Assembly: GCA_964199315.1 (NCBI GenBank)
Contig: OZ116699.1
Coordinates: 29,946,001-30,010,000, forward strand
Direction of reading: 5' to 3'
Origin: Orbicella franksi
Taxonomy: Eukaryota
DNA length: 64,000 nucleotides
This document shows, in pieces, positions 23,001 to 52,531 of this stretch (position 1 is its first letter; every line of letters starts with the position of its first letter). A program made the translations under genes and the position numbers. The notes beneath the pieces are model-generated. The model made no database searches. It was not told the origin of the DNA and saw nothing but the letters and a program-made list of their open reading frames with translations.

Positions 23001-23777
23001 GCCAGTGTGAAGCCCACAGTAACGGTGTCAACCATTCTGAAGTTTGGTCCTGGTGTAGCTCCTGACCCAACTAAGCCACTTCAAGACCATTTGAGGAAGA
23101 ACCTTGGGCGACTTTCAGCTCCTTTAAATCAGAAATCGCTTATTCAGTCTGTTAGGATAGTGCATCCAGGTATGGATTTTACTTTACATTTTCTACATAG
23201 ATATCGTTACTGCAAAATGATAGGTTTTGCATTCGCGATCGTTGACGTGGTTCTCATTATTTCCTAAGATGTTTATGTAAACACGTTAACACAATGCCTT
23301 TCAGATCATGACTGTCTGTAATAGCGATTTAACTCTTGATCTACCAGAAGTGGGCGGCAAGGGAAGAGTTCAGTGAAGGCTTTCTATTTTGAGAAAGGGG
23401 ACCGGGATTTTTGACGACGCTATCAAAATAATTTTGCAGAAGCAGGTGTATTTTGCATATAAGAAAATGTCTTTCTTACTTTAAGTCTAAGGCAAGTGTT
23501 GTTCGTTGCAGGCGTTCCACCAGCCGTATTGGGAACTTGCACCTCAAGCTGCCTCACAACCTGCGTCGTGTCTTGCAACCCATTCTGTTGTAACTCTAAA
23601 AAAAAGTATTTGAATCGGATGGCTATACAACCACCAAGACCTGTACAGCTACCGTGTATCCCTAGTGCTGACAACATTTGTCCGCCTCAGATGAATCCCC
23701 CTGTAAAGGCAACGAAAGTAACAGATCCTCCACAGCATATAATTCATCTGCCACCTCCGCAGATGCAACCACCATGA
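4993..23777 (+). CDS. Gene A: secreted SP-VWA-LamG-EGF-CAP-CTLD-SEA-CRD protein, C-terminally truncated duplicate of gene B (~1039 aa, 14 exons)
   Basis: Exons 4993-5068, 5463-6038, 6349-6812, 8247-8424, 8840-8959, 18195-18242, 19288-19725, 20040-20063, 20664-21050, 21450-21562, 22112-22170, 22289-22495, 23006-23169, 23512-23777. All introns GT-AG with compatible phases; 3120 nt, no internal stop. Confidence 0.75.
5463..6038 (+). CDS. Gene A von Willebrand factor A domain exon
   Basis: [12 protein letters not shown] (MIDAS DxSxS), [23 protein letters not shown]; phase 1-1. Confidence 0.92.
6349..8424 (+). CDS. Gene A LamG/concanavalin-A-like (pentraxin-type) domain, exons 6349-6812 and 8247-8424
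   Basis: [54 protein letters not shown]. Confidence 0.8.
8467..8763. mobile_element. MITE (attattccacgagcg...gatccagtttttaata); duplicate near 31115-31410
   Basis: Intronic and non-coding, with internal inverted segments (gagatggttgatagcc / ggctataaccatctc). Confidence 0.5.
8840..8959 (+). CDS. Gene A EGF-like domain exon
   Basis: [38 protein letters not shown]; six-Cys EGF spacing, phase 1-1. This frame is not in the ORF track. Confidence 0.9.
9280..11958 (+). pseudogene. LINE ORF2, 5' part: apurinic endonuclease and reverse transcriptase
   Basis: APE motifs LNARSL, ITETWL, RGGGV, YRPPS, GDFN, SDH. RT motifs [40 protein letters not shown]. Frameshift near 10430, in-frame TGA at 11165, frameshift near 11497. 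Confidence 0.92.
11959..11993 (+). repeat. 5' LTR, internally deleted to 35 bp
   Basis: TGTTA fused to the last ~30 bp of the 3' LTR sequence (one mismatch). Confidence 0.85.
11996..12013 (+). promoter_or_regulatory. Primer-binding site complementary to the 3' end of tRNA-Ser
   Basis: TGGCGACGAGGATGGGAT is the reverse complement of ATCCCATCCTCGTCGCCA, the 3' end of eukaryotic tRNA-Ser(GCU) as I recall it; starts 2 nt after the LTR. Confidence 0.8.
12091..15423 (+). CDS. Gypsy gag-pol polyprotein (gag with two Zn knuckles, protease, RT, RNase H, integrase N-part)
   Basis: [78 protein letters not shown]. The frame breaks after FTSETFMQ. Confidence 0.93.
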   Translation: MPDEAPNTSQTIGKVTKYVVGTDWESYTEQLDFCFLANGVGDAKTKKAVRLTNLPVETYQLAKDLVAPAQLKDEAITYDVIVERMKKQLKPERSALVARYEFDNRARNSGESVSHYVATLKHLATECKFGEAVRTERLRDRLVSGIRDPKMITDLLKVKLADLTFELAVQKCLAIEQANKDVQVLQGEQGPDIPVNKLDTAQPREGQAPPKLPQKTQGSRGKDTKPPKPCYRCTGSHKSQKCPFIKERCFHCGIIGHTQRACKKKQATQQVTVAGVNVMEGADSEESDGEYGELYHVSDSKNRKPISLEVYLEGRPVIMELDTGSAVSVVSEGVYKEYLRHVPLKDTPLKLRTYTGESVKPMRFCYVTVQYKGQSKELPIYVMKNEGPTLFGREWLESIQLDWPLLQLETSDTNPALEEVLNKHTSVFSDGLGRMKKIQARVQLKESARPRFWKARPVALARKPAVEEALRELEAEGVIKKVTTSEWAAPIVTPVKKDGSVRVCGDFKVTINPQLDVDEYPLPRIDDIYANLGGGTLFSVIDLRHAYLQMEVEEQSRPFLTINTTRGLYQYQRLPYGVASAPAIWQRAMDQVLEGLPGVFCYLDDIIVTGSTMEEHLERLVAVLKRLEEYGLKANREKCKLLRSFVEYLGHVISAEGLHQSPKKVKAITEMPTPQDVTQLRAFLGMVQYYARFLPDLATHLAPLHRLLQKEVKWSWGAEEEASFRVVKEMLLQDKVLVHYDPDLPLVLATDSSSYGLGAVLSHRTPEGEERPIAYASRSLSETEKKYSQIEKEALSLVWGVKKFQTYLEGRHFTLVTDHQPLKYIMDPGKAVPVTAAARIQRWCLFVGAFAYSIEFRGTKQHANCDGLSRLPQPRAPVDKPDEVEMFHTTVVEALPVTEQELRMQTRRDPVLSRVLELVQWGWQEAEVHPELIPYAHRASKITIHHGVLMWGSRVVVPTKLRERVLETLHEGHIGMVKMKGLSRGYVWWPNIDKDIEGAVRNCEGCQETANNPARAPLHRWEYPALPWQRLHVDFAGPFQGKMLMVAIHAHSKWPKIFVLENTTAEEAVSVLRSLFARMGLPDQIVSDNGPQFTSETFMQPLILALHNSC
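15404..15923 (+). pseudogene. Integrase C-terminal remainder in a shifted frame
   Basis: [47 protein letters not shown]. The core segment carrying the third DDE residue is deleted near 15390. Confidence 0.85.
16046..16060 (+). promoter_or_regulatory. Polypurine tract
   Basis: aaaaggggaggaaac immediately before the 3' LTR. Confidence 0.8.
16061..16213 (+). repeat. 3' LTR, 153 bp
   Basis: TGTT...AACA termini, internal AATAAA, followed by the TSD. Confidence 0.9.
16219..16721 (+). pseudogene. LINE ORF2, 3' part resumed after the Gypsy insertion
   Basis: RANRVLG|LVKRTC is rejoined across the insertion; [27 protein letters not shown]. Confidence 0.9.
17248..18190 (+). mobile_element. 3' fragment of an L2/Crack-type LINE interrupted by a MITE; duplicate near 32187-33130
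   Basis: Remnant [21 protein letters not shown], then an AT-rich 3' UTR ending aataaaattgttact. Confidence 0.6.
17628..18108. mobile_element. Tc1/mariner-type MITE (TA-CAGT...ACTG-TA); duplicate at 32567-33047
   Basis: TA target duplication, CAGTAGAATCTCT / AGAGGTTTGACTG TIRs, repeated cctctattaa(g/a)cggcc motifs. Confidence 0.75.
19288..19725 (+). CDS. Gene A CAP/SCP (GAPR1-like) domain exon, degenerate
   Basis: [51 protein letters not shown]. Confidence 0.85.
20664..21050 (+). CDS. Gene A C-type lectin domain exon
   Basis: [35 protein letters not shown]; phase 1-1. Confidence 0.9.
21450..23169 (+). CDS. Gene A SEA-like domain split by a Ser/Thr-rich exon (exons 21450-21562, 22112-22170, 22289-22495, 23006-23169)
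   Basis: [46 protein letters not shown] [ST-rich insert] VTVSTILKF. Matches the SEA pattern and the exon sizes of gene C. Confidence 0.65.
23512..23777 (+). CDS. Gene A terminal exon: minicollagen-type CRD plus shortened Pro-rich segment
   Basis: [18 protein letters not shown] at 23538-23591. In-frame deletion relative to gene B. TGA at 23775-23777. Confidence 0.75.
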
Positions 23778-33400: not shown

Positions 33401-36400
33401 ATGTCTCTAAAAAACAGTAACATCAACACAAAAAGGAAAAGTAGGCAGTGGAAATTAATATACATTCTCAGAGTCAGGCACGATCTCTTTGAGTTGTCTT
33501 CTCATGGAATAAACTGATTTGGTTGCCTCATATTTCGTTTGATTGTATGATTAACACAATTCTTGTGACAGTAGATTTTTAGTGCGGAAACATCATGTTC
33601 TCTTTGTCTTTGTAAGGTCCAACTGTCCGAAGCGTTCCATCTACACCTGCAGGAAAGTCCACCACTCCATCTGGCACGGGACGAGTTACCACACCAAGAG
33701 TTATTACGAATATAGGTTGGTTACTTCAAAAATCAAACTTTGCATAAGTTGGATAAAAGCAATAGCATTAGGTTTAAGTTATGTGAATTTCGTCGTTTGA
33801 CCAGCTCAAAGTCTTGACACCCTTTATTCATTTCTCTCACGTGTTTGTTTCTTTAAAATTTCTTATTTCCATGGAAAATTCAACGGCATACATATATCTT
33901 ATGAATATACTTTAAAGATATTTTAACATCTTTATTGTATTTTACGAGTTCTTTATCTTTTAACCATATATCGATCAGTGGTACATGTATGACTACATTA
34001 GAGTGTTGGTTGCTCTTGGGAATACAAGGCAAGAAAGTTTCCTGAAACAAAATCGGAAGAGGACTCTAACACCTTCTCTGAGGAGTGGGAAGATTAAATT
34101 CTATTTATATGCAGGCCATAGAAAGCCGATACAGTATTTGAAGCCATGGTATTGTAAAATTGAGTATAATAAAAGTTAATTAGAAGTCAGTTAAAAGTTA
34201 AATCCTGTTTTCGTTTCAGACGGATTCAGAATAGAAGTTGTGGAGTACATCAACCGATTCCGACGACTCCACGGCGCAGGCCCGCTTATCCTCTCGACTC
34301 GCATTTCCATAGCCGCTCAGAACTGGGCGCAAACGTTGCTCAGTCGTGGCACCACGTCGATAGATCCGAACACGAGTTACGGCACGAATGTCTTCTCAAA
34401 GGTTGGTGCTCGAACGGGATTGGCTCAAACGTCTGTGGTCACATGGTACACTTCAGTGAAGCATTATGACTGGGCGAGACGACAGTTAAAAGTTCTCGCG
34501 TTGCCTTTCATTCACCTTATATGGCTCTCAAATAATTTTGTAGGCGTTGGATTGACCAGGTCGCCAACTGCAAAGTTTTTTGTTGTGGTGTACTTTGACC
34601 CAATGCCGGGAAATAAACCACCATCTTTACTGAAAGACAACGTTCTACCATACACAGGTACATTCACAAAATAAGTCAAAGTAACTCTAGTAAAACGGAC
34701 CTGAATGTCTCAAAGATGACTTTTTTTATCATAGCTCTTGACATGTCTTGCGTATTATTCTTATCCTCTTATTTTTTTTTTTGTTCTGCTTAAATTAAAG
34801 CGTTTTCAAGATTTACATTCCTTTAAGTGCTAGTCACTATGTAATCCTGTTAGTTAATTATATTCTTCAATTCCCTTTTATTAATTAGTCAACAAGACGT
34901 AATCGAGGACATTTTATAATGAGATTTGCTTTCTTTGATCTAACTACCTTACGTTTTGAATTTTTTTAGATGTGTTCATCCTGCTGCAGAGTGGTGAGTC
35001 ATTTTTTTATATTTCTTATATTTTATATTTTCGTAATGCATCCGTAGAGTTGCTGAATGGCACCTGGCTTAATAATCTTTATTCTCCAACATGAAATTTG
35101 GCAAAATTGTAATTATCTAGGCGCATTCGTCTTCTGTTCTATTCACAACATTTGTTTGATTATTTACAGTATCCTCATTTAGCACAGCACTGATGATAAA
35201 TATTCTGACCCAGTGAATTATTTATTTTATGTCATTTTCTCTGCAAATTAAATTAAATCAAATTAGCCTGGCTCTAGAGAGCGGTCTTCATATGAGTGTC
35301 CAATAGCGATTGGTTTTGCATCAACTACGCTACAAGATTGGCTTAAAAAAAAACTCGCGCCACTATGTCATCCAATCAAAAGTAAAACCAAAACCCATTG
35401 TGACTCGCTCGCACTCTTTTCCCCGCGTTTCACGTCAGCTATATGCAATTACTTCGAGTTTTGATTGGTTAACTGTATTCTTGTCTGTGTCCTTTGAAAT
35501 TGGTTTTGGTTTGACGACACTCAATTGTAAACCGCTCTATACATACAAGACTGAGACGTTGTTTAACACTGTGCTGTTTATTTAATAGCCATAGTGTCTT
35601 GCAACCCTGGCTATACGAATGAAGACGGCACTTGTTACAAGTATCACTCAGACAAGCAGAATTGGGACGGAGCATTGTTCCAGAGCGCAAAGGAAAACGC
35701 TACCTTGATATCGTTTCACAAGACATCAGAGGAAACTTTCGTACAGAAACTGGTCCCTACAGGAAAAACAGGTTTAATTTGGACAGGCCTGAACGATCTG
35801 ATTACTGAGGGAACTTATACTTGGTCTGACGGCACCAGCGTCGAATACACCAGCTGGAAAGTAAACGAACCAACTGGATCAAAAGAGGATTGTGTTTGCA
35901 TTGAAATGTCCAGTTACGGCACCATGTCCGATGCTCCATGTACTGAGCCTCATACTTACATTTCAAGGCAACCACTTGAAGGTGAGGGCTTCACTTCAAG
36001 ATTATTGATAATTTTTGAGATAGATTTTTTATAATAGGAACAAACATATTTTCTTGTAGTGACCACCGTTCGTACGAAGTGGAATGCTTTTTGATCGGAC
36101 TGGGAAACGTAATCGTTTCCTTTCTTTCCCTTTTTTTTAAACTGCATACACAAAAGAAAAAGATCTCAATGAATGAATGATATATGTTTGCCAGTCGTTA
36201 AACATATCATGGGATGAAATCGCTTATCCATATAGTTTACAACCTGATGATCCATCCTCGCCCTTCCTAAAATTAATACTTGCAAATAAACACGAAAGAT
36301 ACCAAGACAGATTTACAGCTAATAACAAAGACAAGACAAAAAGACAAGTATGAACTAAAGCAATAATTTTCATTCACGAAATCGTTGTCTTCGTTTGAAA

Positions 36401-39400
36401 AAACATTTCAGGTCTCATAACATACCGAGTGAAACTTCAGCTAGTTTCCTTACTATGGACAGATGACTATAGCCAAACGACCACACTATCGTATATGGAG
36501 CTGAAACAAAAGATAGAAACACTGGTAGGCATATAGTGCCGTAAATGAATAATTGATTCCCTTTACATAACCGCAGCTAGCTAGCGTTACAAATTACCTC
36601 AACATAATGTATTGCGCACCCCAAGACATTGTGGACCTTTTAGGGATAATGTAAACAAAAGACCAGCCAACTTCAGAAGTGGCATTCTTGAGACCCGGGA
36701 CGCCCCTCCCCCCCCCCCCCCCTCCCCTTGACCACCTGGTCACTCCGGCTCCTCCTCCTGGTGCAGTTAATAAAATTTATCCCTAAGCCTGAGTACCTTA
36801 CCAGCTAGGCTGACGCAATCATTATCTAGCTCTGGTTTTCGTTACACGTAACCATAACTTTGTTGCATTTCTTTCGTTGCAATTGTATCTTCCAAGAAAA
36901 AAAAAAAACAATACAAGAACAATAGCCAGGGCTTGATTGCTTGACCCATCGGCTTTATCATGATCATCATGCATCATACAACATGAAGGGCTGCAAAGAA
37001 CGTTCAAACTTTCTAGATGGACAGTGTCGATATAGCAAATATTTCCTATTTGTATGTATATTATTTATCTTTTTTACAATCTTCTTTTCAGCTGTTGGAA
37101 ATTTTTAAAATCGACACTACATTTGTATCGGGATACGTCGAAGAGTTCACGTAAGTAACAGTTCAAGCCGCAATATTACTGAATTGAATAATTTTCAAAG
37201 CGAATCTGTTCAATAATGGTGATGTTTACAAATAATATATTATTTCTTATTTGAAACTTAAAAAATAGTAAAAGTACGAAGCCATCCCCTCAAACATCAA
37301 CCAAACCAACAAAGCCCGGAATAACGACACTTGGTTCCCAGACCACCACATCGTCTGTCTCCGTTGCAACTGGCAGACCAACGACCAGACCAACACTGTT
37401 TTCACCAGGAACCACGCAGGCCACAACTCCGGCTTCAAAGCCAACTTCGAGTGGGACCTCCAAGTAGGTTGCTATTTAGTTTTTGTCAGCCAATTAAACG
37501 ATTATCATGCTACAAATTGAAGGCTGCTCAAGCATGTACGATTTTGTATTGTCATTAGGTGTGCAAACAACAGAACGACAAACCGACTGACCAACGAATA
37601 GACAGACGCGCAGGCTGAACGACAAACAGATGACATAGACAGCCTTCTTCATCAACTGCTTTATCTCTCGGTAATTTGTATTTGTCATGGTGAAATAATG
37701 GTGCCTTATAACTTGCCTTATAACTTGCTTTATGACACTCTCAGCGTGGTCGTCGAGCCAAATGGCATTTCGGCAACTGAATGAGCAGGATCATATAATG
37801 ATCAGTGATACGACTCAATTTGTCATCAAAATGTGAGATGCAAAACTAGCATAAATTGCAGACGTTTACAATCCATATTCTCTCCCTACTTCACTACAAA
37901 TTGTCTCAGTGGAAGTCATTGTTTCTTTAAAGACCGCTACTCGTTAAGTATCTTTTTTGCTCGAATTCGCCAGTGTGAAGCCCACAGTAACAGTGTCAAC
38001 CATTCTGAAGTTTGGTCCTGGTGTAGCTCCTGACCCAACTAAGCCACTTCAAGACCATTTGAGGAAGAACCTTGGGCGACTTTCAGCTCCTTTAAATCAA
38101 AAATCGCTTATTCAGTCTGTTAGGATAGTGCATCCAGGTATGGATTTTACTTTACATTTTCTACATAGATATTATTACTGTAAAATGATAGGTTTTGCAT
38201 TCGCGATCGTTGACGTGATTCTCATTATTTCCTAAGATGTTTATGTAAACACGTTAACACAAAGCCTTTGAGATCATGACTGTCTGTAATAGCGATTTAA
38301 CTCTTGATCTACCAGAAGTGGGCGGCAAGGAAGAGTTCAGTGAAGGCTCTCTATTTTGAGAAAGGTGACCGGGAGTTTTGGCGATGCTATCAAAATAATT
38401 TTGCAAAAGCAGGTGTATTTTGCATATATATAAGAAAATGTCTTTCTTACTTTAAGTCTAAGGCAAGTGTTGCTCGTTGCAGGCGTCCCACCAGCCGTCT
38501 TGGGAACTTGCACCTCAAGCTGCCTCACAACCTGCGTCGTGTCTTGCAACCCATTCTGTTGTAACTCAAAGATAGTCGCTGCCAATAACGTCCAATACAC
38601 CGGCATGCGACATGCAGTGATAGCCCAGGCAGCCCCTAAAGGATCGATTCTTCCTCGTTTGTTTAAGTACCCAATGAGCCCACAAGTTAACATGTTTGCT
38701 GCGCAAACTGTAGCTCCACAAGCCCGGCCTGTAGCTGTGCCAGTAACTCTGTCCGTGAGATGTGTTCCAACCCTACAGAGACCTTGTCCACCTGGAACTC
38801 AAGCTGCCCAAACGATACGGGGATCTTATAAAATGCCTCAGCCGGGAATTCCCCGGAGAATCTTTCAGCCGCAGCCACGTCCAGTACTTGTCCAGCCACT
38901 GGTGTTGCCTGGAGCTCCTGTTCTCACGCCAAAGTATTTGAATCGGATGGCTATACAACCACCAAGACCTGTACAGCTACCGTGTATCCCTAGTGCTTAC
39001 AACATTTGTCCGCCTCAGATGAATCCCCCTGTAAAGGCAACGAAAGTAACAGATCCTCCACAGCATATAATTCATCTGCCACCTCCGCAGATGCAACCGC
39101 CATGTATTCCTAGCCTTTACAATCCTTGTCCACCTCTCATGAGTCCCCCTGTTAAATATAAGACGACAAAAGTAACAGACCCACCACAACATATAATTCA
39201 TATGCCACCTCCGCAGATGCAACCACCATGTATTCCTAGCCTTTACAATCCTTGTCCACCTCTCATGAGTCCCCCTGTTAAATATAAGACGACAAAAGTA
39301 ACAGACCCACCACAACATATAATTCATCTGCCACCTCCGCAGATGCAACCACCATGTATTCCTAGCCTTTACAATCCTTGTCCACCTCTCATGAGTCCCC

Positions 39401-41067
39401 CTGTTAAATATAAGACGACAAAAGTAACAGACCCACCACAACATATAATTCATCTGCCACCTCCTCAGATGCAACCACCATGTATTTCTGGCGCTTACAA
39501 TCCCTGTCCACCTCTCATGAGTCCCCGTGTTAAATATAAGACGAGAAAGATAACAGATCCACCACAGCATATAATTCATCTGCCACCTCTTCAGACGCAG
39601 CCACCATGTATTCCTAGTGCTTACGAGCCTTGTCCACCAGCGATAAATCCTCCTACCCAGACTACAAAAGTAGTGGACCCACCACAACACGTAATACATC
39701 TGCCACCCGCACCACCCGCACCTCCACCACCTTCATCAAATTTCTTTCCCATGCCATTATCTGTTCCTGTACTGTGCATTCCTCGCCCTTTCTATCCTTG
39801 CCCGCCAACGGCTGGAGCAAGAAAGCTTTCGAAACCCTCGCATATGAAAGGGAAGTCTCGAGCTGTCATGCCTAAACCAATTGTAGGTTCCTATCCAGTT
39901 CCTTATGGAAAACAACCATATTGGCAGCCTCCAGTTGCATTATATACCCCGTTTGCCCCACCAGTGATGCCTCTTTCCCTATTGCAGCGACCAGCGCAAT
40001 ACACACCAAATATGTATGGCTATCGTACTCCGTTTCAAGGGTATCGCCCTCCTGTATGGCCACAGGTTATGAGAAGGCCCCTGGTGATGTCCCCTTGGGT
40101 TCCAATGCCTCAGCGCCAGTATCCTCCTGTCATGAAACCAGTTCTAGATGACAAGCCAAAACAGAAACCACCTAGACCTATTCCAGCCAAAGGGCCCATT
40201 TCTCTAAAAGGCTCTATTTTAGTGTATCCGAAGCCAGTACCAGCTATTCCTCCTTCTCCTCCGGCTGCGGGTCCATGTATTCCTACTATAAATAATCCCT
40301 GTCTTCCCTCTCGTCCGTATCCTATGGGACAAAACACTTTCTCCATGATGAAACCCTGCATCCCTTCCGTAGCGAATCCCTGTCTTCCAAACACAGGAAA
40401 CATACCAACAAAGCCCCCAACAAAACCAGACGAGAGTGAGGCAAAACCTATCCTGTTAACAAGGCCACTGCAGGTGCAAGGGAGTGTATATTTCAATTTT
40501 CGCCCACCTCCTCAAGGATCAGCTGCCCCTTCCTCCGCCCCAGTGCCATGTGTTCCAACTGCGACTACGCCGTGTTCACCATTAATGCCACCACGTCAAC
40601 CTTTTATGCCACCAAGCTACGTTGCCTCGAAGGTCCTAAATCCTTTCTCTAACCTAATGACTCCCAAAGTACCTCAGCCAGCTATTGGGGGTGTTGTTCC
40701 TGCCCTTGTCAACCCGAATGTACCAAAGATTCCTCCTGCAGCTCCACATTCAATTATTGTTCAGCTTCCTGAAATTTCCCTTCAGGCAGCCCCAGCATCG
40801 TCTCTTCCACGGCCTTTCATTCCTCCCCAGCCGTATACACCAGTCTTTCCAAGCAATTGCCCCGTGTCATGTACTCACTTTCCAGGTGTTTTCTGTCCAC
40901 CATATTGCGCAAGTTACTGTTGTAAAAACAGAGGTGGAAACCGAAAGAATACTAAGAAGAAAACAGAAAAGAAAAAGAAGGAAGTTAAAAAAGGAGGAAA
41001 GGGGACAAAAAAGAAAACTAAAAAGCAAAAGAGCATTTTGAAAGTGAAGAAAACTAAAAAGGGGTAA
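27498..41067 (+). CDS. Gene B: full-length secreted NOWA-like protein SP-VWA-LamG-EGF-CAP-CTLD-SEA-CRD-Pro-rich-CRD-Lys tail (~1806 aa, 14 exons)
   Basis: Exons 27498-27567, 27962-28537, 28850-29313, 30893-31070, 31487-31606, 33135-33182, 34220-34657, 34970-34993, 35595-35981, 36412-36524, 37092-37150, 37269-37463, 37974-38137, 38483-41067. GT-AG with compatible phases, 5421 nt open. Confidence 0.8.
27962..28537 (+). CDS. Gene B VWA domain exon
   Basis: Intact DASGS/T/DG MIDAS motif. Confidence 0.92.
28850..31070 (+). CDS. Gene B LamG/ConA-like domain (exons 28850-29313, 30893-31070)
   Basis: Paralogous to the gene A exons. Confidence 0.8.
31487..31606 (+). CDS. Gene B EGF exon
   Basis: Identical by eye to 8840-8959. 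Confidence 0.9.
34220..34657 (+). CDS. Gene B CAP/SCP domain exon
   Basis: As in gene A, two amino-acid differences. Confidence 0.85.
35595..35981 (+). CDS. Gene B C-type lectin exon
   Basis: As in gene A, two amino-acid differences. Confidence 0.9.
38483..41067 (+). CDS. Gene B terminal exon: N-CRD, Pro-rich region with 11 C-x7-C motifs, variant C-CRD, Lys-rich tail
   Basis: 860-codon open frame; [18 protein letters not shown] (38509-38562), [22 protein letters not shown] (40858-40923). Confidence 0.9.
38981..39720 (+). repeat. Coding tandem repeat, 126-bp (42-aa) period, about 6 units
   Basis: catgtatt recurs at 39101, 39227, 39353, 39479, 39605; unit [42 protein letters not shown]. Confidence 0.95.
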
Positions 41068-44000
41068 TTTTGATTTTATTTGTTAGTAAGTCGGTACATA
41101 GTTAGTAGAGGTCGGTATAATCATTGTTTTCCAGCGGAACTAACTGAATCTATTAATGCAACAAACACACACCAGCGACAGAAGCCTCACCTGAATTCCT
41201 ACAGAGGAAAATTCTTGACATTCCTCTCAGTCTCACATATGGAGAGAGAAACAAACAGCCACCGCAACTCGGGCATTTCTTCTCTAAGCATGTAAAATTA
41301 TGATATGTTTTGAAAAAACAGGATTCGTTTGTAGAACGATTTAACCAGTATCAAATCTAGCTCGACATGAGGGGCTAGCTATTAGAATAGTTTAATAAAT
41401 AGACATTAAAATTATTCAAGGTATCGTCCTTTTGTCGTCATTTTTACAGCTAATACTTACTGAGTAAGCTAAAACGTTCTCGAGGCGTAGTATATTCTGT
41501 TTTATATAGAAATACATTTACATTTTTATCGCTGATTTATGTTATACATCTTAGTGCTCTTGGTGCTGAAATTCATTTAAGAAAAGCATCCGTTCAAGAA
41601 ATGCATGGAAAAATAAAAGACAGAGTAGTCTTCAATTAGAGTCTTAATGAAAGTTAGGGAACAAAATGAAATAATAACCTGGCGTAGATGAATACCTCAA
41701 TAGCACGAGAAAAGTACGGAATAGACAGATATATCTTCAGTTGTAAAGTACGTGTTAAATTCCTGACTGAGTTAGAAATGGTGTGAGTAAACTAATATAG
41801 AATACCATGGTGCTGTGAAAAGATTACTGAAGGACTATAGCGATAATCCAAAAAAATCAGTTCCCTTATTGTAGTTAAATATAAATAAATCCATGCAATT
41901 CAACGCCGAATTTGTCTGTTTTGTCATTTAAAGATTCGTCTGTCGAGTCAATAAAACAAATCTCAAACTAACGTCAATACATTCAATTGATGTTAAGAAG
42001 ATTTCCCACATAATTTTGAACAAATAGAACCCATTTGATTACAGGCGAGTGATAAAATTTGGTCCAAGGCCAATAGTGCTCGGCATCAAATTCATAGTGC
42101 ACAAAAATGATCCCTTTTTAATTGTTCAATTACTGAGAGAAACTGGAATAACTGTGACCACGATCTAAACTTTACGCAGATATTTCGTTTTCCAATCCTT
42201 GGAGATACTTGTCTGTAAGAGTTCCAAGATACATAGTTCCATCTCTCAGATAGAGCAAACCAAGTTCGAAGTGAAAGCCAGTGGAAATATGCTAGTTTGT
42301 TCACAGTCTATTATGCAATTAACCTGATCTGTTACGGCCTTACAACAATCATTCTAGGCAATACGGCGCGGCGTGTAATTCTGGGTTGAAAAGTATCTCC
42401 TATCACTCGTTCCCATTTTTCCTGGTATGTCTACCCAGTCCCCATTTGGTTTGGCGTGACGTGAGGTGACAAGAGATGTGCACTGAGCTAGCAAATCAAA
42501 CAGTAAGTAAACGGGACGTTTTGGGATTCACAAGCAATTAAATGGTGTTTTTTAATTCATATACCAGTGACCACATACAGTGTACGTAATCCTAGTCTAT
42601 AGTTGTTAGCGCTTTCATCAGTTGTAACTGATTTGCACATATTTTAGGCACAATCTTTTTGTGTGAAAAATATCTTATTCTCGTGAATTTACCCAACCGG
42701 CGTTTGTTTTAAACAAAGTAGACGTTTTGGGGGAACATCCTCATAGGATTGTTATGAAATGGCGTTAAAAAACAACCTGTTAAACTTCTTTCATCTAAGG
42801 CTGAAAACAATTCCAGAAAGTTGTAAGCTCGATGTACTCTACTCATCAAATTACTTATTTTACTATTTCGATAATAAAACAGCATGCGCCAATATCCTAC
42901 AGACTACAAGTTTGTTGGAAAGCTATACTTCCTTTTCCAGTATTTTTTCATACCATAGAATTGTTCCAAAAACACCATAAATTTTAATGACATAAGGAAG
43001 CCCATTTCCTCGAGCCTTCACCGAATTCGGTTGTCTGCAAAAATAAACTTGTGACGTTAGTGCAGTAATATTCAACAGCAAACATACATTTCTTCTAAAT
43101 ACATCCATTTATACACATACTTTTATGAGAAAAGAGACAAACTTGTTCCTAAAATTGAACTAAAACGCCGACATTTTTTGTTCATTGTTTCTCCAACCTT
43201 GGACGAAATCCCATCAACAGCCAGATGGCGTCATGTTTGATTCGCTATTTTCAGCAACCTGGTGTTTTACCATGTTTTGACAAAAGAACAACAAAACAAA
43301 TGGACAATCTATCGTTTCTGTTGGCCAGCCAATTGAAAACATTGAGTGACTTATGATTGAAAATATTTAAACCTTTGGGATTGAATCACTACAATCAGAC
43401 TAGGAGGTAGTTCTAAGTGAGCCATGTCTGGAGGGTTCTAGCCAAGACCAAAGGACTTCATATATTTGGCTCCGAAAACTGCCTTATTAGATACAGGTAA
43501 GAGAAATTCATCGCTTTGACCGATTTATTAACAAAGGTCGGTCGTATTTGCAGCCCGATTTAACGGTAGCGTTAAATCGATTAATGATGGCATTCTGATA
43601 GAGGTAAAACATTGAGTAGCGTCGTCGGTCTTTGAGTGAAAAGTGTTCGATGTATGGGGTAAAAATGTCATCCTAGACAATGTGAAAAATTTTACTTTAT
43701 CTCCAGTTTTGTTTCTTTTTGGAATTTCTAGTTCAGACGCAAATTTGATATTTTGCGGATTAACCTATATTCTGCTCTTTATCCCCGTGGCTTAAATACG
43801 TAAGCCCTTCTTTAAACATTTCGGTATTGAAACATCATTGAAAACAGATGGAGATAAAGACTGAATTAAGAATTGAATTACGTTATTTTGGACTTCGCTT
43901 CAAGTCTTACGTTAAATCGTTATTTTAACTTGTGACCGTCCATGAGTAATGGAGCAAAGAGTGTTTTTTTTAAATCTTGTTCACACCATGAAGTGATCGT

Positions 44001-45335
44001 TTATATATCAAAGGAAAACAATTTACGAAAGGACGAAGTAGAAATGTCATCAGCCTGTAAACAAGAAAATGGATCTTTCGTTAAGGTCGCATGTAAATGT
44101 GATAGATGGGGTGGAAAAGAAAACACTTGTTACAGCTGATTAATTTCAAAACTTTGCATCGTTTTTGCCAGTGTTTTAGCTTTGTTTCTTGTAATTTACA
44201 CGTTTGTGGCAACATAAGTCTTCAGTCGATATTGTTATGAATTTAGCATTCCGTCGTGATATGGTAATTTAACTACATGAGATAATATATGTTATCTTTC
44301 AAATGATTGGCATGTCTTGACTTTTTCCGAGATCCTGAAACATGCCAACTCCTTTGAAATTTATTTTAACCTGTCCTTTCCTTGGAACAAAAAAAATCCA
44401 AATTTCCCCTGTAACACTGCAGGGTTTAATTGCTTCAAAAAAGAGGCCTAGGAGAATACCTGATGTTACACCCACCTGTCATGTTTATAGATTGTATGTT
44501 ATTATATGAAATGATCCGTGCAATATGTAATACTAAGTGACTGGTTTGTTCATCGTAGGGACGACGCTCTTTGATCAGCAAGGGAAACTCGAGATTGAGG
44601 TGAGGGAGAATCAATTGTCGAACAATGAATAGCGAGTTTAACTTAACCTTTGGCTTTTTTTCAGAGTGAATCTTTCATATCAAATATTTCATGTGAGTAG
44701 TTAAAAGAGAAAACCTCAAAAGTCACACGTCTTTCCCAGAAGTCTTGCCATCTGTCTAGAGAAATATAAGCAACTTATATATTGTTGTGATGGACTTTTC
44801 ATGTAAAGATTGTGTATTGTTAAGGTCTTAATTTTTCTTATGACTAAATCAAACTAGCTGTCATATAGGACAGAGCTGAGTGTTTGCTAGAGTCGACTTA
44901 TTCTACATGAAAGAGTATTCTGGTATGCCTGGATGTGTGAATCAGCAAAGTAGCATTCCTTTGAGTTCCCCAATTGAGACAAATACTGTAACTTCTCCGT
45001 ACTCCGTTCATCAGCGTTACTATTGAAGGGTACAAAAAAATCCATTCCATATATTCTCTAAAGAACCTTGCCTAAACTTCCATTTTTCAGTCTATCCCGC
45101 AATATATTCTACAGAAAAAAAAGCTCTTATTATATAATAGAATATATCCTTGTCGTACTGCCTAAAAATACCGCAACTGTAAGTTAGCTTGTGTAATGCT
45201 CTATTTCTTTATGTGTTGGAAGATTTCTGCTACATTCATGTTAAACGACATGTTAACTGATACAAAGACGTAACGTTGCTCACTTTTACTTTGTATCCTT
45301 CGTTGCTACAGGTTTGGAAAGCCTAGCCGACTGAT

Positions 45336-48300
45336 ATGAGGGGATTCTTAGCAATTTTTCTACTAACGTTTGGTCTCCTCGTAAGAGCTAGAGGTGAGAT
45401 CCCTTACGTTGTGGGATAGATTAAACAAACAATATATAAATGTTGAATTTTAGTTAGATTTCTGAGTCACTATTGTTGTAGATGCAATATAACGTGGCGT
45501 ATTATGAAATAAGATGGACTGCCGTGTATCATCACCTCTTGTCAACAGACTATGTTCTATCATGTCAAGCCCCTTTCTAGTCGCTCAGTTAGCAGTCACT
45601 TTGATTATGTCGGACTAGCCATACTTAACTGAACAGAGGTGCTCATAATAAAAGCATGTTTTTCTTAAGGTCAACTGGTGGCTTTTTTCCCTGACTGAAT
45701 TATTAAAAAACCTTTTTTTCCCAAAGCATTATTACACAAACTAAGCGGATTTAATTCCGTGTTAACTGACATATTTGTGTATCGAGAGAGCTAAAGACAT
45801 CATTCTGCCGTTAAGTTCTTTAATTGAGGTTGCCGTGTTACAGATTGGCAAGCTCTTTTATCAGGAGTAAAATGGAAAATAATTAAACACCATCACTGGA
45901 AATTTTCCTAAATAGACACATTTTGAGATTTTGAGATTTCATTAAAACCAAATTACGCGAATTAAACCAGCTAGTCCTACAAAAAACTACTAAATGAAAA
46001 GACTTGTTGTATTAGCTAATGGTAATATATTTAATGTCTCTCTTTTTCATCTGATAACTTTAGAACATGACAGGTTTTCTCCAACAAGATCCAGTCTCAA
46101 TGACGGTTTGTGCTCAGATTTGATCTTTATATTAAAAATAAGTTCTACCCCCTTGTAAGGCCTAAAATGTCAGTTCAGTCCATGGGAAAAGGAACCCTTT
46201 CACAGCAAAACCCAATTAATACCTGCCGAAGAATGACGAATTTTGGAAATAATTTTAGTTGTTAGAAATTATACTATTCTAATCAGAAGTTTATTTAAAA
46301 ATAAAGTACAATTCTCTCTTTCAATCAATAGACCAATCAGGGTGGCACATGTAAAGTTCTAAACTAAAATTCTTTAAGATAACTAAGTATAATAACGTTT
46401 GATCAATAACTATAACAGCCACTACTTACTTAAGAGATTTAAAGATTTCAGAATAATAATAAGTTAAGCCCTTTGGATTTTTTCCCGAAATATTAAGAAA
46501 TAACTCATAGGAGTCTATTGTATAGCTAACAAGGGTTAAACTCAGATATCAACACATCTCATACACACTGACTCTCTTTGTGGCGTGCGCTAGTCGAATA
46601 GCGGGCTTAGTTACCGATCGTTACCGTTGCTAGATGTCTCTATAGTGTACCAGTCGTGACAGTGCGTTCGTCGATTATTTGTAATCATTTCTGCATGAAC
46701 AGAAAACGTGTTAGAATCGTATGTTATATCTGACTTACACTATCAGGTTTACCAGCTTAACGGCATCCAGCATGGTGTAGGCATGTTTTCACAAATAACA
46801 CTGACCAATGGCAATGATTTAATTGCAGCATTTACTGATAGCAGTGACGAGTCGGCTGCACCATCATCGTTTTCTGATTCCGCATCACGACATAACAACA
46901 ACAACAACAACAACAACGACTGGCTTACTGACGATGATGACGATGATGAGGATGACGTCATGGACGAAAGTCAACTAAACGTGCAACCAGCAGCTAAAGC
47001 GGCAGCAGCGAAAACGGCAGGCAAGCCAAAGGTAGCTGTGGTTCCACTCAGTACTGGTAAGTTACTGGCCTGTCTCCGAGTGAAATCAATATCACGCTGT
47101 TTTAATAAGTGTCTTATCTGCTGTCCTACTGTTAATTTCTCTTATTTGTTTTCTGACCAAATTGATGACATAAATCTTTAACTGAAAGCTACCTTTTGTC
47201 TAAGTTTCCACTTGCATGTACAGATGTTAACACTTATTACTAAACATAATTTTCATTCCATCTCGTCCATCTCATATTTCTCCTCAGCGCAAATAGCGAG
47301 CAAACTGCTCTACGGGCTAAATGGTTTGCGTCGCAGCTTTGGAGCAGGGCCTGTAATTTGGTCGCCAACCCTCGATATTGGAGCTAAGGCCGCTAATGAC
47401 GCAATGCAAAAGGCAGGTGTAGTCAAGAAAGATCCCAACATCAAACACGGAACCCTGCAGTGTATAAAACTAACAAGTTCAGACAAAGTGGTTGCAGAAT
47501 GTTTATCGTTTTGGGGGCGGCAAATGCAGGATTATGATTGGTCAAAACCAGCAATCAAGGAAAACAACAGATTTTTTGTCACAGCCGTTTACAAGGCAGC
47601 GACACATGCTGGTGTTTCGGTCAAGAAAGGACCTTCGGGAAGATTCTTTTGTACTCTGCTGCTAGATCCTGCCCCTGATGCATCTAAGTTGAAGGACAAT
47701 GTGAAATCATACACTGGTAAGAGTGTTTTTAATGTTCCTCAGAATTTTCAGTAGGCCTAGTAAGTACCTAGTCACTTTGAGTCACAAGCCTTCCAATGTT
47801 TTTAAAGGACATCATATAAAATTGCCTTTTGCACCTTTCATTTTCCGAGAAACAAACCACAAGACTTTGTATTTTCCACTCCCGAAAGTTATTGGTGGGA
47901 TATGCACTTGACGGACTATGAGTATGTTTGTAGATGGCACGTTTAATTTTCCAAACTTTAAAGAAGTATTCAATCGCTTTCAACAGTTGGTTACTAAATA
48001 TATCTTCATATTTCTGTCGCTGATCGTTGATCATGCAACCTCTTCTGCCTGGTCCTGTTGAATCATCAAAGGGAATTTATAATTTCATAATTTCTGCAAC
48101 TAGTCAATTATCTTTTTACTGCAATGCAGTTGTTTCGACTTACTTTGATCCCTCTTTGTTTCAGATCTTTTCACTAGTGTTCCTGGAGGTAAAATATTTT
48201 TGTTGTTTACCGTTTTATCGCTAAAATAGTTATGCTTAATCCTTTTAGCCCCAATGTAAGCTTCATTTCAATATATGAAGATAAGCTTTCAATTACGTAG

Positions 48301-51300
48301 TGACCATGCTTACATTAGCTGAAGCATGGTTTGACTGATCTTTTACCAGTTGAGAGATATAGCTCTGATAAGATAAGAGGCAGCGCTTTCATTGTTATAG
48401 CCGCCATGTGAATGAAAAGTGCTTACTTTGTGCAAGCATAATTCTTCCTGATTTTGCAAGTTTTCACCCTTTTTTGCTATTTCTTCGTAGCTAAATGTTC
48501 GACTGGATTTACCGAATTCGGAGGATCCTGCTACAAACTTCACAAAGACAAACAAACCTGGATGAATGCAAACGCAGAATGTATCAAGGAATCTGCATTT
48601 CTGCCGCCAATCGGGAGTACAACGGAAAACGAATTTTTTAAACAGGGGCTCTTGAAAGGCGAGAAAGGTTTCAGCTGGCTCGGTTTCAATGACCGCCTTT
48701 CAGAGAGCATGTATATGTCAGTTGAGGGATCACAAATCCGCTTCATGGACTGGGTTAACGGTCAGCCTACCGGCAAAAATGAAAACTGTATAGGGTTCAA
48801 TAAAGACGCTAAATACGGAACGATGGCAGACTATCCATGTACCACAGCCAGCACATATGTGTGCAAAAAGCCCTTGGAAGGTAAGTAGGAGTTTCATTCA
48901 AAGTAACAGACGACTTGAGTGGTAAAGTCACGAGACGTAAATTTTCCATAAACTAGAATCAAGACTCCCAGATTTGTTGAAGAGAGCAGTGTTCCAAAAT
49001 TTTGCCTATAATTTGACCGTGCTTGAGTAATCTTTTGCCACCGTAAAAAAGGATGATGTTTCATATATTCACTTTTATATGATTTCATTTTAGTCATGAA
49101 ATTGGGAGCAATTGAGTAATTGGAATTTGCTTGTTCATTTTAGGTGACATAACCTATCTCCTCAAGATTGTAATAGAATCCATGCTGTGGTTGGACGATT
49201 TGAGCAATCCTGGCTCCCTCGCTTCACAGCAGCTTTCCAAAAAGCTCCAACAGGCGGTATGCATAAAACGTTTCCTTGTCCAGAAAATGTTTGCTATTAA
49301 CAGTGATTGAATAGACTAGCTTTTAGAAAAAGCAAAACTTGATGTACCTGGATCAATTTTAAGTTTAATAACAGAAAAATAGATAAATGAAGTTAATGAG
49401 TGCATGTCAGTTTAACAGAATTAACCAAAAGCGACAAAGGTTGTGCAACTTGGGTTCCAAAATGATCAGTCTCAATAAGAAAGCAGCGATGTTGTATAAT
49501 CATTGATAATGGATCATTTGCTTCCCCTTTGATGTGTAGATCAAAGAAATTTACACGAAGGCGGGAGTCAAAAACCTTAAGGCTGTCACTATCACCTCCG
49601 TTAGGTAAGTTAGAGCAAATTCCTTCAAACTAACAGCATTTAATTTGTTATAATTTGTAAGTTGGACAGATATTCTGCTGTTACAATGACGTCAGTCATT
49701 TTATCATCCCTGTCATCATAGGCCAAGTTAAATCCTGATGCTTTCTTTGAATGGATAATTCCTTAGTGATGGACATCGTGGTAATTCACGAATATGTGAT
49801 AAATACTCACAACTATGTGAAAAATATTTTCTCTGAGGATACTTACTGAATAAAATAATGTCATCCCTTTCAGCAATGGTTTACCACCACAGCCAGCACA
49901 AGCATACCCAGCATACAACTATCTGGGCAAGCGTCAGGTGACTGCCATCAGAGTCACCCCCGCACCTACCACGCCACCCAAACCCAAACCCTCAGCTGGA
50001 GCCGCGAGCAAACCTACTGTCAAACCCACACCTCCCAAAGTTCCAACAACAAAGTAAGGAGTGACGTCTTTCGATTTGATGATATTACAGTGCATTTCAT
50101 TACTTAGTTAGTGTAAAGGCTCGCAGTAAAGAATAAACGCATGGTTTCCATTACAAAGGTGTAATTTAGCTGCCAAAATGTCCTTCTTAAATGCTTTTTG
50201 TAGGATTTTTTGCAGGGCACAGTACTAACTTATGTATTGATCATTTTGTCATCGGAAGAAAGTAATTTATGTCTGAAACGAAATATGACTTGTCTCTTTA
50301 ACTTGTGCTCCAAATGAAAACACTATCATATATTTTCAGGCCAAAGAAGAAGGTTACTGTCAAACTTTCATTGACGTTCGGACCAAGCGGCATTCTACCT
50401 GACCCAACCGCACCTCTTCAGGATTATCTTCGTGCCAACGCCAACAAACTACCAGCGCCATTGAACGAACAAGTTAAACTGCTTTCCATTAGCATTGCTC
50501 CTCCAGGTATATAAAAACGTTAATTTTTCGGTAATTATACTTTTCTCTGACAACGCTCAACTTCGTCGCTTGTTGTAGTTCCATCATAAATCTTAACGTA
50601 AGCAAAAGGTGAGGTCTAACTTTTCAGTTATGTAGGTCATTTTGTACGATTTCCATTCGTTCCGACGCATGACAACAGAGTAAACAGTACAAATCTAAAT
50701 GTTTGCGTTTATGATTTTAGGTTCAGCGTCCTGCCCTCCTATCTGCTCCACCTCATGCGTGTCAAGCTGTGCACCGAGTTGTTGTTTCAGACCGGCGCCT
50801 GCCCCAGCTCCATACGTACCACCCCAGCCATGTGTCCCCACTCCATATAATCCATGTCCGCCTAAACCAGCACCAACACAGCCAGCGCCGACACAACCGA
50901 AGGTCCCAGCCAAACGACCCGCGGCAAAATGTACACCGACTCCATCAACACCGTGTCTACCACCAGTGCCTTATCCTTACCCACCGCCAGCATTTCCTCA
51001 GTACCCGGCTCCACCGTGTGTTCCAACTGTAATGAACAACTTTTGCAGGAACCTAGTCGCCAAGCCGCTTGTAGCAAACGGAGGAGGGTTCTTTGCTCCA
51101 AAGCCTGTCGTGAATCCTGCCGGCATTACTTACAGATATCCACTTCAACCGGCATACAGGCGTATCATGCCTAGGTTGGTATCTTCAAGGCCGGTTTCTC
51201 GCGCTGTGTTGCCTGTTCCACAGGCAGGGGGTTATAGGCAGTGTGTTCCTAGTCCTTCAAACCCATGCTCTCCAATAATGATGCCTCCTCCTCCACCTCC

Positions 51301-52177
51301 GCCTCAGCCTATGATGATACCTCAGTTTCCTATGCCTCAGGTAAGCAATCGATTTGCTCCATTGTGTTGCATGCCAAAACGTCCATGTTATAGCGGTACG
51401 AAACACCACAAAAATCAAATACAGCTAGTAAGCAAAGGACAGCAAGAGTTCCGAGCGGCCTTTTATGAGATTCAAAAGCGGGAATTTATAACAAGGATGA
51501 AGAGAATTCGATAAAAATGCTTGAAGAAAAGAGCAAATGCAATAAATTCACTGACTAACAAGTGGTTCTTTACGCAAAACCCTTCTGTGACGAGGTGAGG
51601 ATGAGGAGAGGTGGAAGGAGACAGGGAGGGCTTATACATATGGGTATTGACAGACCTATTCCAGCGTTTATAATCTGTGGGCATTTGTATATATGTAATT
51701 TATTATGTAAGTTAGACATAGAGCGCTTTCAGATAAAAGTAAATTTATGATATCTGATTTGTAACCAATCCTGACTTAAAGCGTTGTTCGATTCGTTCCA
51801 ATTTTAATCGCAATTCTTTTTTCTCTTTCTTTCCACAGATGGCACCGCCCTGCATTCCAAATATTTCCCCGAACTGTCCCCCAAAACCTCCACCGAAGAA
51901 GCCGGCAGCTAAAGCGGTGAAACCAGCCAAACCTTTACGCATAATGGGCTGTACTTATCCACCATGCAGCGTAATGATGCTACCTCCACCACCTCCACCA
52001 CCACCTCCTCCGATGCCAATGCCCATGCCAATGCCCATGCCAATGCCCATGCCTTGTACCCCGACTCCTTTCAACGCCTGTCCACCTCTTTCCCCTCCAA
52101 AAGCAGGCAAGACTAAGTCTAAAAGCACTGCTCCCAAACCGTGCGCTCCAGTACCTACACCCGGATGTGTACCACAA

Positions 52178-52210
<33 letters not shown>

Positions 52211-52531
52211 CCAATGCCAATGCCCATGCCAATGCCAATGCCTGTGCCGCCAATGCCCATGCCGATGCCTTGTGGGCCTCCACCGGCAAAGCCATGTGTC
52301 AAACCAACCAAGCCGCCACCGCCCAAGCCAATGTTAATCAAGCTCCCCGCCATACAGATCCAGGTTCCTCAGCAGCCAGCACCCCCCATGGTCCCACCCA
52401 TGATGCCACCTATGCCTCCTTGCCCTCCAATGTGTGTAGCACCTACCCCTGTTTGTCCGCCAGCGTGCCCCAAACCGTGTTGCAAGAGGGCAAGGCTGGG
52501 AAGGTCCGTACAGTCTTCCAAAAGGGAATAA
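45336..52531 (+). CDS. Gene C: secreted NOWA-like protein SP-acidic-CAP-CTLD-SEA-CRD-Pro/Met-rich-CRD (~988 aa, 11 exons)
   Basis: Exons 45336-45393, 46829-47056, 47288-47716, 48165-48188, 48491-48880, 49144-49256, 49540-49604, 49874-50053, 50340-50506, 50721-51340, 51839-52531. 2967 nt open; signal MRGFLAIFLLTFGLLVRARA. Exon phases parallel gene B. Confidence 0.8.
46894..46956 (+). repeat. Coding (AAC)8 poly-Asn and Asp-rich run in gene C exon 2
   Basis: HNNNNNNNNDWLTDDDDDDEDD. Confidence 0.9.
47288..47716 (+). CDS. Gene C CAP/SCP domain exon (highly degenerate)
   Basis: LNGLRRSFGAGPVIWSPTL..FW..QMQDYDWSKP..FFVTAVYKAATHAGV..LKDNVKSYT; homologous to gene [10 protein letters not shown]. Confidence 0.75.
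48491..48880 (+). CDS. Gene C C-type lectin exon
   Basis: CSTGF..GSCYKL..TW..A..EC..SWLGFND..MDWVNGQP..ENC..C..YVCK. Confidence 0.92.
50721..52531 (+). CDS. Gene C terminal exons: N-CRD, Pro-rich C-x7-C region, (MP)n tracts, variant C-CRD
   Basis: CPPICSTSCVSSCAPSCC (50732-50785); CPPMCVAPTPVCPPACPKPCC-KR (52421-52489); phase-0 intron 51341-51838. Confidence 0.88.
52013..52270 (+). repeat. Coding hexanucleotide repeats (ATGCCM)n encoding (Met-Pro)7 and (Met-Pro)11+3
   Basis: Read directly at 52013-52054 and 52178-52270. Confidence 0.95.

Follow-up and report, generated by a model that had tools for sequence, protein, structure and literature searches.

A proline-flanked pair of cysteines is repeated between the cysteine-rich domains of NOWA-like proteins in the coral Orbicella franksi

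Introduction

Cnidarian stinging capsules are under a pressure of about 150 bar, and their proteins are stitched together by disulfide exchange. To our knowledge, the six-cysteine cysteine-rich domain (CRD) is the only stitching module recognised so far, and it has been studied almost wholly in Hydra. A stretch of 64,000 nucleotides from the coral Orbicella franksi (assembly GCA_964199315.1, contig OZ116699.1, positions 29,946,001 to 30,010,000 of the forward strand; this whole stretch is called the window, and all positions are counted in it) carries two genes, B and C, in which a CRD stands at either end of a long proline-rich region and a much smaller, proline-flanked pair of cysteines recurs between the two. 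An earlier note, made from the DNA letters alone, had read this pair as a minimal disulfide loop or a distributed cross-linking unit. The locus therefore raises the question whether the pair is more than a product of composition, how strictly it is kept, in what kind of protein it stands and what it may do. We describe here a hitherto undescribed repeat motif within a known kind of protein, the NOWA-like, CRD-flanked structural proteins of cnidocysts.

A two-cysteine unit recurs between the cysteine-rich domains

Gene B carries both CRDs and the region between them on a single large last exon, defined by its open frame, a splice acceptor (gttgcag before GC, at about 38481), 20 homologues and contigs of polyadenylated (polyA) RNA. 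In gene C the same region is split over exons 9 and 10. The features are as follows.

38482..41067, + strand: large last exon of gene B, with N-terminal CRD, proline-rich interior holding 11 C-x7-C units, C-terminal CRD, lysine-rich tail and stop codon
38509..38562, + strand: N-terminal CRD of gene B, canonical CX3CX3CX3CX3CC
38758..38793, + strand: B unit 1, position conserved across all distant homologues
38980..39639, + strand: B units 2-7, overlapping a 126-bp tandem array, copy number variable among relatives
39772..39807, + strand: B unit 8, a conserved basic block adjoining its 3' side
40273..40308, + strand: B unit 9
40354..40389, + strand: B unit 10
40546..40581, + strand: B unit 11
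40858..40923, + strand: C-terminal CRD of gene B with an expanded loop, C-x3-C-x7-C-x3-C-x3-CC, embedding C-x7-C-P-P
50721..51340, + strand: exon 9 of gene C, bounded by RNA joints and open in frame, three C-x7-C and one C-x8-C
50732-50785, + strand: N-terminal CRD of gene C, CPPICSTSCVSSCAPSCC, canonical CX3CX3CX3CX3CC
50828-50863, + strand: exon 9 unit PCVPTPYNPCPP
50927-50962, + strand: exon 9 unit KCTPTPSTPCLP
51014-51052, + strand: exon 9 C-x8-C unit PCVPTVMNNFCRN (PCVPTVMNNFC)
51239-51274, + strand: exon 9 unit QCVPSPSNPCSP
51839..52531, + strand: exon 10 of gene C, four C-x7-C, poly-Pro and (PM)n runs, C-terminal CRD and stop codon
51848-51883, + strand: exon 10 unit PCIPNISPNCPP
51947-51973, + strand: exon 10 C-x4-C pair, GCTYPPC
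52052-52087, + strand: exon 10 unit PCTPTPFNACPP
52139-52174, + strand: exon 10 unit PCAPVPTPGCVP
52268-52303, + strand: exon 10 unit PCGPPPAKPCVK
52421-52483, + strand: C-terminal CRD of gene C, CPPMCVAPTPVCPPACPKPCC, a variant with one loop widened to x6, embedding C-x6-C-PP

The interior of gene B comprises 765 residues, 26% of them proline, and all 22 of its cysteines fall into 11 pairs, each spaced by exactly seven residues. The interior of gene C contains 37% proline and totals seven C-x7-C, one C-x8-C and one C-x4-C. These counts and the example peptides agree with those of the earlier note (11 copies in gene B, seven plus one C-x8-C in gene C), from whose list only the C-x4-C pair was absent. 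A further CC...C motif in the tail of the exon 9 reading frame, past 51340, is intronic, as the RNA is spliced from 51340 to 51839.

About five of the B units are supplied by a young tandem array (39043-39638) with a period of 126 bp (42 amino acids), 4.7 copies and 94% identity, in which a conserved 15-residue segment is kept between units. Further short hydrophobic blocks of the B interior persist in homologues with an identity as low as 33%. The spacer of the B family is therefore not a featureless polyproline. Exon 10 of gene C contains long (Pro-Met)n dipeptide runs (51978-52057 and 52170-52273) together with a P10 run, and its methionine richness recalls Hydra Cnidoin.

The pairs were compared with chance expectation by shuffling the residues of each gene interior 20,000 times. 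For C-x7-C, the 11 copies of gene B stand against a shuffle mean of 0.49 (maximum 5) and the seven of gene C against a mean of 0.58 (maximum 5); with the tandem array collapsed, gene B still holds seven copies against a mean of 0.26 (maximum 3). The proline-flanked form C.P.{5}C[PLSV]P occurs ten times in gene B and six times in gene C, with shuffle means of 0.02 and 0.05, respectively. As the shuffles never reached the observed counts, the motif does not have the equal frequency in shuffled Pro/Cys-rich sequence that the earlier note had named as a possible objection.

A Pfam search with the B exon and both CRD exons of gene C retrieved no family at E ≤ 1, and our literature search found no description of the motif and none that pairs CX7C with the nematocyst. 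Within this genome, the clean matches to a strict DNA pattern of the motif are all in genes B and C; six further matches fall in low-complexity repeats of the CCCTGCCCC type, and a reversed-pattern control gave a similar number. A degenerate DNA pattern run over the JGI (Joint Genome Institute) metagenomes marked 120 loci, nearly all of them single chance matches in bacteria; the only informative ones were L018, L032, L118 and L132, which hold orthologues of B or C, and L068, which holds a new lineage. A HMMER profile of the B family (alignment A1), searched against 1.84 billion cluster representatives, gave nine matches, eight of which are relatives or fragments. The ninth, P0034, is a bacterial repeat protein that lacks the Cys motif and was rejected as spurious. 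Both the gene-C family and the L068 lineage were missed by the profile among these representatives, and sequence searches therefore cannot delimit the spread of the motif. A feature search of the ESM Atlas with gene B returned no usable match.

The pairing of the cysteines is conserved more widely than their spacing

A word-indexed search with gene B yielded 20 homologues of 33-86% identity. Among the 212 short Cys gaps (4-12 residues) of these proteins all but one are exactly seven residues long, the sole other gap being an x12 in an N-terminal open reading frame (ORF) extension of the homologue P0019, and the interior cysteines always come in pairs. From 166 distinct instances in the B family the consensus P(80%)-C-[IV](93%)-P(94%)-[ST](78%)-x-[YF]-N(57%)-P(74%)-C-P(66%)-P(92%) was derived. 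Units 1 and 8 keep their position throughout, also in P0019 and P0020, the remotest members (33-37% identity), and the cysteines, prolines and basic block of unit 8 are invariant in 19 homologues; the pattern of the C-terminal CRD is likewise invariant among the homologues. The number of units ranges from five to 17 per protein, and the differences arise in the 42-amino-acid array and by three-fold duplication of a block of about 400 amino acids (P0009, P0011).

In the new lineage of L068 (P0035-37), every one of the three members, which share 49-55% mutual identity, carries exactly four x7 pairs. Its members have in common the pre-CRD exon (with ILKFGPKVAADPTTPLQD), the N-terminal CRD, the C-terminal CRD (x3-x6-x3-x3-CC) and a Lys-rich tail, while the interior is otherwise unalignable.

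In the orthologues of gene C (P0021-29), the four pairs of exon 9 behave differently from site to site: site 1 is invariantly x7 and site 3 invariantly x8, whereas site 2 is x7 or x6, and site 4 is x7, x8 or x4, with one Cys moved and its partner staying in place. The conserved spacing claimed in the earlier note is thus strict in the B lineage, where it is x7, but two of the four exon 9 sites of gene C drift (x4, x6, x7, x8). The universally conserved feature is therefore a close Cys pair with Pro flanks, for which x7 is strongly preferred and is the sole spacing in two lineages.

Outside the motif, genes B and C barely align, as had been claimed. The best BLASTP matches between them are the units themselves (E 0.054), and one collinear patch of 67 residues around unit 8 has 48% identity (E 2.4); as stated above, the B profile misses the C family. 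Together with the uniform x7 gaps of the B family and the four x7 pairs in each member of the third lineage, this bears out the suggestion of selection on the motif. Also conserved across lineages is a basic block beside a Cys pair (39772-39870 in gene B; 51160-51230 and 52088-52140 in gene C, there RPVSRAVLPVP and KAGKTKSKSTAPKP). The block may serve for the binding of glycosaminoglycans or for processing.

The first tetrad of the unit, C-[IV]-P-[ST], resembles tetrads of CRDs, namely CIPSC in Cnidoin, CAPSC in CPP-1 and CAPSC in the N-terminal CRD of gene C, and on this likeness unit and CRD may plausibly share an origin. An attempt to map the unit to one register of the CRD (C1-C9, C5-C13 or C9-C17) was abandoned as ambiguous, because the tetrads of the CRD are internally repetitive and C-x-P-S recurs in several registers. 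In the fold of a C-terminal CRD, the bridges C1-C17 and C9-C18 have been published (PMC4863159), which by elimination leaves C5-C13 as the third bridge. This is a C-x7-C ring, and a ring of such size is therefore feasible in this protein class.

The units are part of transcribed genes with CAP and C-type lectin domains

The remaining parts of the two genes lie upstream of the CRD exons:

34240..34674, + strand: CAP/SCP ORF (Pfam CAP, E 1.4e-12), assigned to gene B by an order parallel to that of gene C
35594..36034, + strand: C-type lectin ORF of gene B (Pfam Lectin_C, E 2.8e-15)
37957..38235, + strand: last pre-CRD linker ORF of gene B, 53% identical to the gene C exon 50340-50506
47288..47716, + strand: CAP/SCP exon of gene C (Pfam CAP, E 2.6e-5), with RNA splice joints
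48491..48880, + strand: C-type lectin exon of gene C (Pfam Lectin_C, E 1.7e-12), with RNA splice joints
49144-49256, 49540-49604, 49874-50053 and 50340-50506, + strand: four linker exons of gene C, with GT..AG RNA joints and an open frame

Gene C is one spliced transcript, which encodes CAP, C-type lectin, linker, N-terminal CRD, the Pro-rich region with the pairs, and C-terminal CRD. Ten of its exons were found in public polyA RNA with canonical GT..AG joints (46828-47056, 47288-47716, 48165-48188, 48491-48880, 49144-49256, 49540-49604, 49874-50053, 50340-50506, 50721-51340 and 51839-52531). Most joints lie on one RNA contig of 2.2 kb and all are backed by joints in raw reads; that between 51340 and 51839 is covered by eight raw reads in addition to contigs. 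The joined frame is open over at least 970 codons, and the RNA indicates a further exon upstream that ends at 46104. A minor splice from 51172/4 to 51839, which removes 166 nt and shifts the frame, was seen in one RNA contig of low depth; its alternative donor near 51174 is probably splicing noise and was treated as such. The linker region (49144..50506) contains a Pro/Thr-rich stretch. Ahead of the CAP domain, the N-terminal part (46828-47056) contains poly-Asn and then an acidic segment (NNNNNNNNDWLTDDDDDDEDD), which may be a propeptide.

PolyA RNA assemblies of several studies contain the large exon of gene B. That its CAP and lectin exons belong to the same polypeptide as the CRDs is suggested by the parallel order of the genes and by P0033, the spliced product of a relative, in which the pre-CRD exon is joined directly to the CRD exon (..IVHPG to VPPAVLGTC..). 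Within this genome the pre-CRD exon is confined to genes A, B and C, gene A being a truncated copy described below; a Pfam search with the last linker exons, the linker ORF of gene B among them, found no family. Around the distant homologue P0019 (locus L012, 7249-21704), a lectin exon and a CRD exon are followed by a second CAP and lectin. Since this is the same order as here, the tandem arrangement of B followed by C is older than the divergence of these species.

A segmental duplication has left a truncated third copy

Upstream of gene B lies a remnant of the same kind:

23496..23777, + strand: gene A, with N-terminal CRD, one unit (23652-23687) and the start of a second unit, after which the frame ends

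Gene A is a truncated copy that arose from a segmental duplication. This tandem duplication of about 15-22 kb copied a vWA-domain ORF, an adjoining ORF and the CAP, lectin, linker and CRD exons (block pairs 5519-6821/28018-29322, 19308-21124/34240-36034 and 22865-23777/37833-38760) and thereby placed gene A beside gene B. Because Nematostella vWFA proteins have been reported to be cnidocyte-specific (PMC12549020), the vWA gene could be a member of the same functional cluster. Mobile elements lie between the duplicated blocks (9151-16721): ORFs for a non-LTR-type (LTR, long terminal repeat) endonuclease and reverse transcriptase (9151-12038 and 16155-16721) are interrupted by the gag-pol ORF of an LTR retrotransposon (1119 aa, 12064-15423), which forms a GC-rich island (~0.50).

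The coral genes resemble NOWA but differ from it in the tail

NOWA proteins, known from Hydra and as NvNOWA-1 to -4 from Nematostella, consist of a CAP/SCP domain, a C-type lectin domain and a Cys-rich part with minicollagen-type CRDs, of which Hydra NOWA has eight, each canonical with six cysteines (PMC10014300). The coral genes share the CAP/SCP and C-type lectin domains on the CRD polypeptide, in gene C by its transcript and in gene B by the indications given above. They differ in having no C-terminal tandem array of canonical six-Cys CRDs: each protein contains two CRDs, 380-770 residues apart, with a Pro-rich spacer of 8-11 two-Cys units between them and an additional pre-CRD linker. NvNOWA-2 and -3 bear gene numbers that are almost adjacent (NV2.10392, NV2.10388), which suggests the occurrence as tandem paralogues as a further likeness. 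In Nematostella, expression of the four NvNOWA paralogues is specific to the type of cnidocyte (PMC12549020). NOWA transcripts have been annotated in Acropora and Galaxea. Anthozoan NOWAs are known only as annotations, and in the literature on them we found no description of their tails. Like NOWA, the coral proteins, whose expression is seen in bulk RNA, are expected to be disulfide-linked structural proteins of the cnidocyst. Genes B and C are accordingly taken as tandem paralogues encoding a coral NOWA-like structural protein, whose placement in the stinging capsule we infer from domain architecture.

In design, the coral tail comes closest to Hydra CPP-1 and Cnidoin. CPP-1, a capsule-wall protein integrated by disulfides, has a non-CRD N-terminal domain, a CRD, a proline-rich rod and a second CRD (PMC6910907); it is much shorter, lacks CAP and lectin, and its rod is one unbroken poly-Pro run without interior cysteines, whereas the interiors of genes B and C are broken by 18-22 cysteines and a P10 run occurs only in gene C. 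Cnidoin shares with the coral proteins a CRD-flanked disordered interior with many regularly spaced Cys pairs (C-x6-C in GCGGQMQGC), for which its authors suggested possible added covalent cross-links (PMC4321713). Its interior is Gly/Gln/Met-rich and silk-like, with pairs that are x6 and have no Pro flanks, and CAP, lectin and any sequence similarity are missing; conversely, the silk-like repeat QMQGCGQQxP is not found between the coral CRDs, where Pro dominates.

The earlier note had placed the units where minicollagens have their collagen helix. The CRD-X-CRD topology stands, as do Pro-rich flanks and a basic C-terminus past the final CC, and the terminal CRDs are of the minicollagen type (CX3CX3CX3CX3CC), canonical at the N-terminus and variant at the C-terminus with a loop of x7 (B) or x6 (C). 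Nevertheless, the proteins are not minicollagens, which are defined by a central triple-helix sequence of 12-16 Gly-X-Y repeats: the longest (G-x-y)n run is two in gene B and one in gene C, Gly amounts to 3.6% and 2.5%, respectively, gene C is spliced to CAP and lectin, and the coral proteins are 5-10 times longer, with globular N-terminal domains and the expanded loop in the C-terminal CRD.

Discussion

What could such pairs do? In transit, the disulfides of CRD proteins are intramolecular; the proteins are then built into the polymer of capsule or tubule by disulfide exchange (PMC4863159, PMC6910907, PMC10014300), from which reducing agents release them (PMC4863159, PMC6910907); Hydra NOWA oligomerises via its CRDs (PMC10014300). 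By analogy, we propose that each pair forms a local loop, closed by a disulfide, while the protein is secreted, and afterwards acts as a cross-linking point along the chain, a proposal to which we give an even chance of being right. While the protein passes through the secretory pathway, each pair of cysteines would bond together and close a nine-residue ring, so that no free thiol is left on a long, otherwise unfolded Pro-rich chain. During maturation of the capsule or tubule, the loops would join the disulfide reshuffling known for CRDs, and the opened loops would form intermolecular bridges that tie each molecule into the polymer at five to 17 points, not just at its two ends. Fast change of unit number by tandem duplication would then tune the density of cross-links. 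No arrangement other than an initial closing of each pair on itself would explain both the strict even parity of the cysteines and the retention of the pair when one Cys shifts. Such retention, seen in the gene-C orthologues, is what one would expect where a Cys depends on its neighbour as a partner.

Several points weigh against this proposal. The bonding of the interior cysteines within their pairs is deduced from their arrangement in the sequence, and the assignment to the nematocyst follows from domain architecture only. AlphaFold2 models, calculated for gene B with 19 sequences and for exon 9 of gene C with ten, were of low confidence (mean pLDDT, the predicted local distance difference test, of 34 and 48, respectively) and gave no usable fold. 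In the B model, local pLDDT peaks (~40-47) coincide with the units. An isolated one-residue beta-bridge joins loop positions +3 and +6 in eight of the 11 loops, always with poor pLDDT (block means <50), and nothing similar is seen in the model of gene C. These models do not discriminate among the explanations. Finally, two lineages keep x7 strictly and conserve I/V, P, S/T and N, which points to a constraint of geometry or recognition beyond pairing that the proposal does not explain. The extra constraint may stem from a defined turn, from prolyl hydroxylation or from recognition by a cnidocyte-specific disulfide isomerase, enzymes which have been reported (PMC6161364).

The same features fit permanent intrachain loops that stiffen, kink or protect the Pro-rich chain from proteases, with cross-linking left to the terminal CRDs. 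This explanation, which we regard as rather unlikely, accounts equally well for Cys pairing and even parity, and a defined small structure agrees with the strict spacing and conserved loop residues of the B lineage as well as with the low-confidence beta-bridges of its model. It is opposed by the gene C model, in which loop structure is missing, by the rapid change of copy number, which is more easily read as a tuning of valency, and by the known reshuffling of disulfides of this protein class into networks (PMC4863159). An in-register ladder, in which Cys-to-Cys bridges link parallel chains from the outset, seems improbable. It finds a parallel in antibody hinges, where Pro-flanked CPPC or CPRC repeats bridge parallel chains; the coral cysteines are likewise flanked by Pro on a Pro-rich, probably extended chain, and the conserved short hydrophobic segments could align neighbouring chains. 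A ladder, however, requires neither pairs nor an even number of cysteines, both of which are invariant, and it leaves unexplained why a pair is retained when one Cys shifts.

The units might also be decayed CRDs, relics of an array like that of Hydra NOWA with two of six cysteines left, which have no role of their own and are kept because an unpaired Cys is harmful. The likeness of C-[IV]-P-[ST] to CRD tetrads and the eight CRDs at the corresponding place of Hydra NOWA (PMC10014300) speak for such a descent. Relics would be expected to vanish pairwise; instead, sites are invariant across distant lineages, new copies have been amplified and kept, non-Cys positions are conserved too, and no intermediate forms with three or four cysteines occur among about 35 homologues, so that we consider this explanation very improbable. 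Hardly credible is an artefact of Pro/Cys-rich sequence, or a metal-binding site. Nothing beyond the composition of the interiors (26-37% Pro) speaks for it, chance is already refuted by the shuffles, and the motif is conserved across lineages, with clean matches to the strict DNA pattern confined, within this genome, to genes B and C. Two thiols eight residues apart with no nearby His or further Cys are not a usual metal site.

Returning to the loop that closes in transit and opens for cross-linking, a further-reaching and more doubtful idea is that the 12-residue unit P-C-[IV]-P-[ST]-x4-P-C-P-P may be an autonomous redox-switchable module, a closed ring in transit and a source of interchain bridges in the maturing capsule, which replaces the eight-CRD array of Hydra NOWA in corals and possibly in all anthozoans, and whose copy number, altered by tandem duplication, sets cross-link density and mechanics for particular types of cnidocyst.

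If the proposed role is correct, the motif would be a second and much smaller stitching module, distributed along the chain rather than placed at its ends, in the poorly characterised NOWA-like proteins of anthozoans. It would explain how corals build a polymer with just two CRDs per molecule, and it would provide a simple, testable peptide for redox-controlled cross-linking, relevant to existing CRD-based biomaterials, as well as a sequence signature by which such proteins may be found in other cnidarians.

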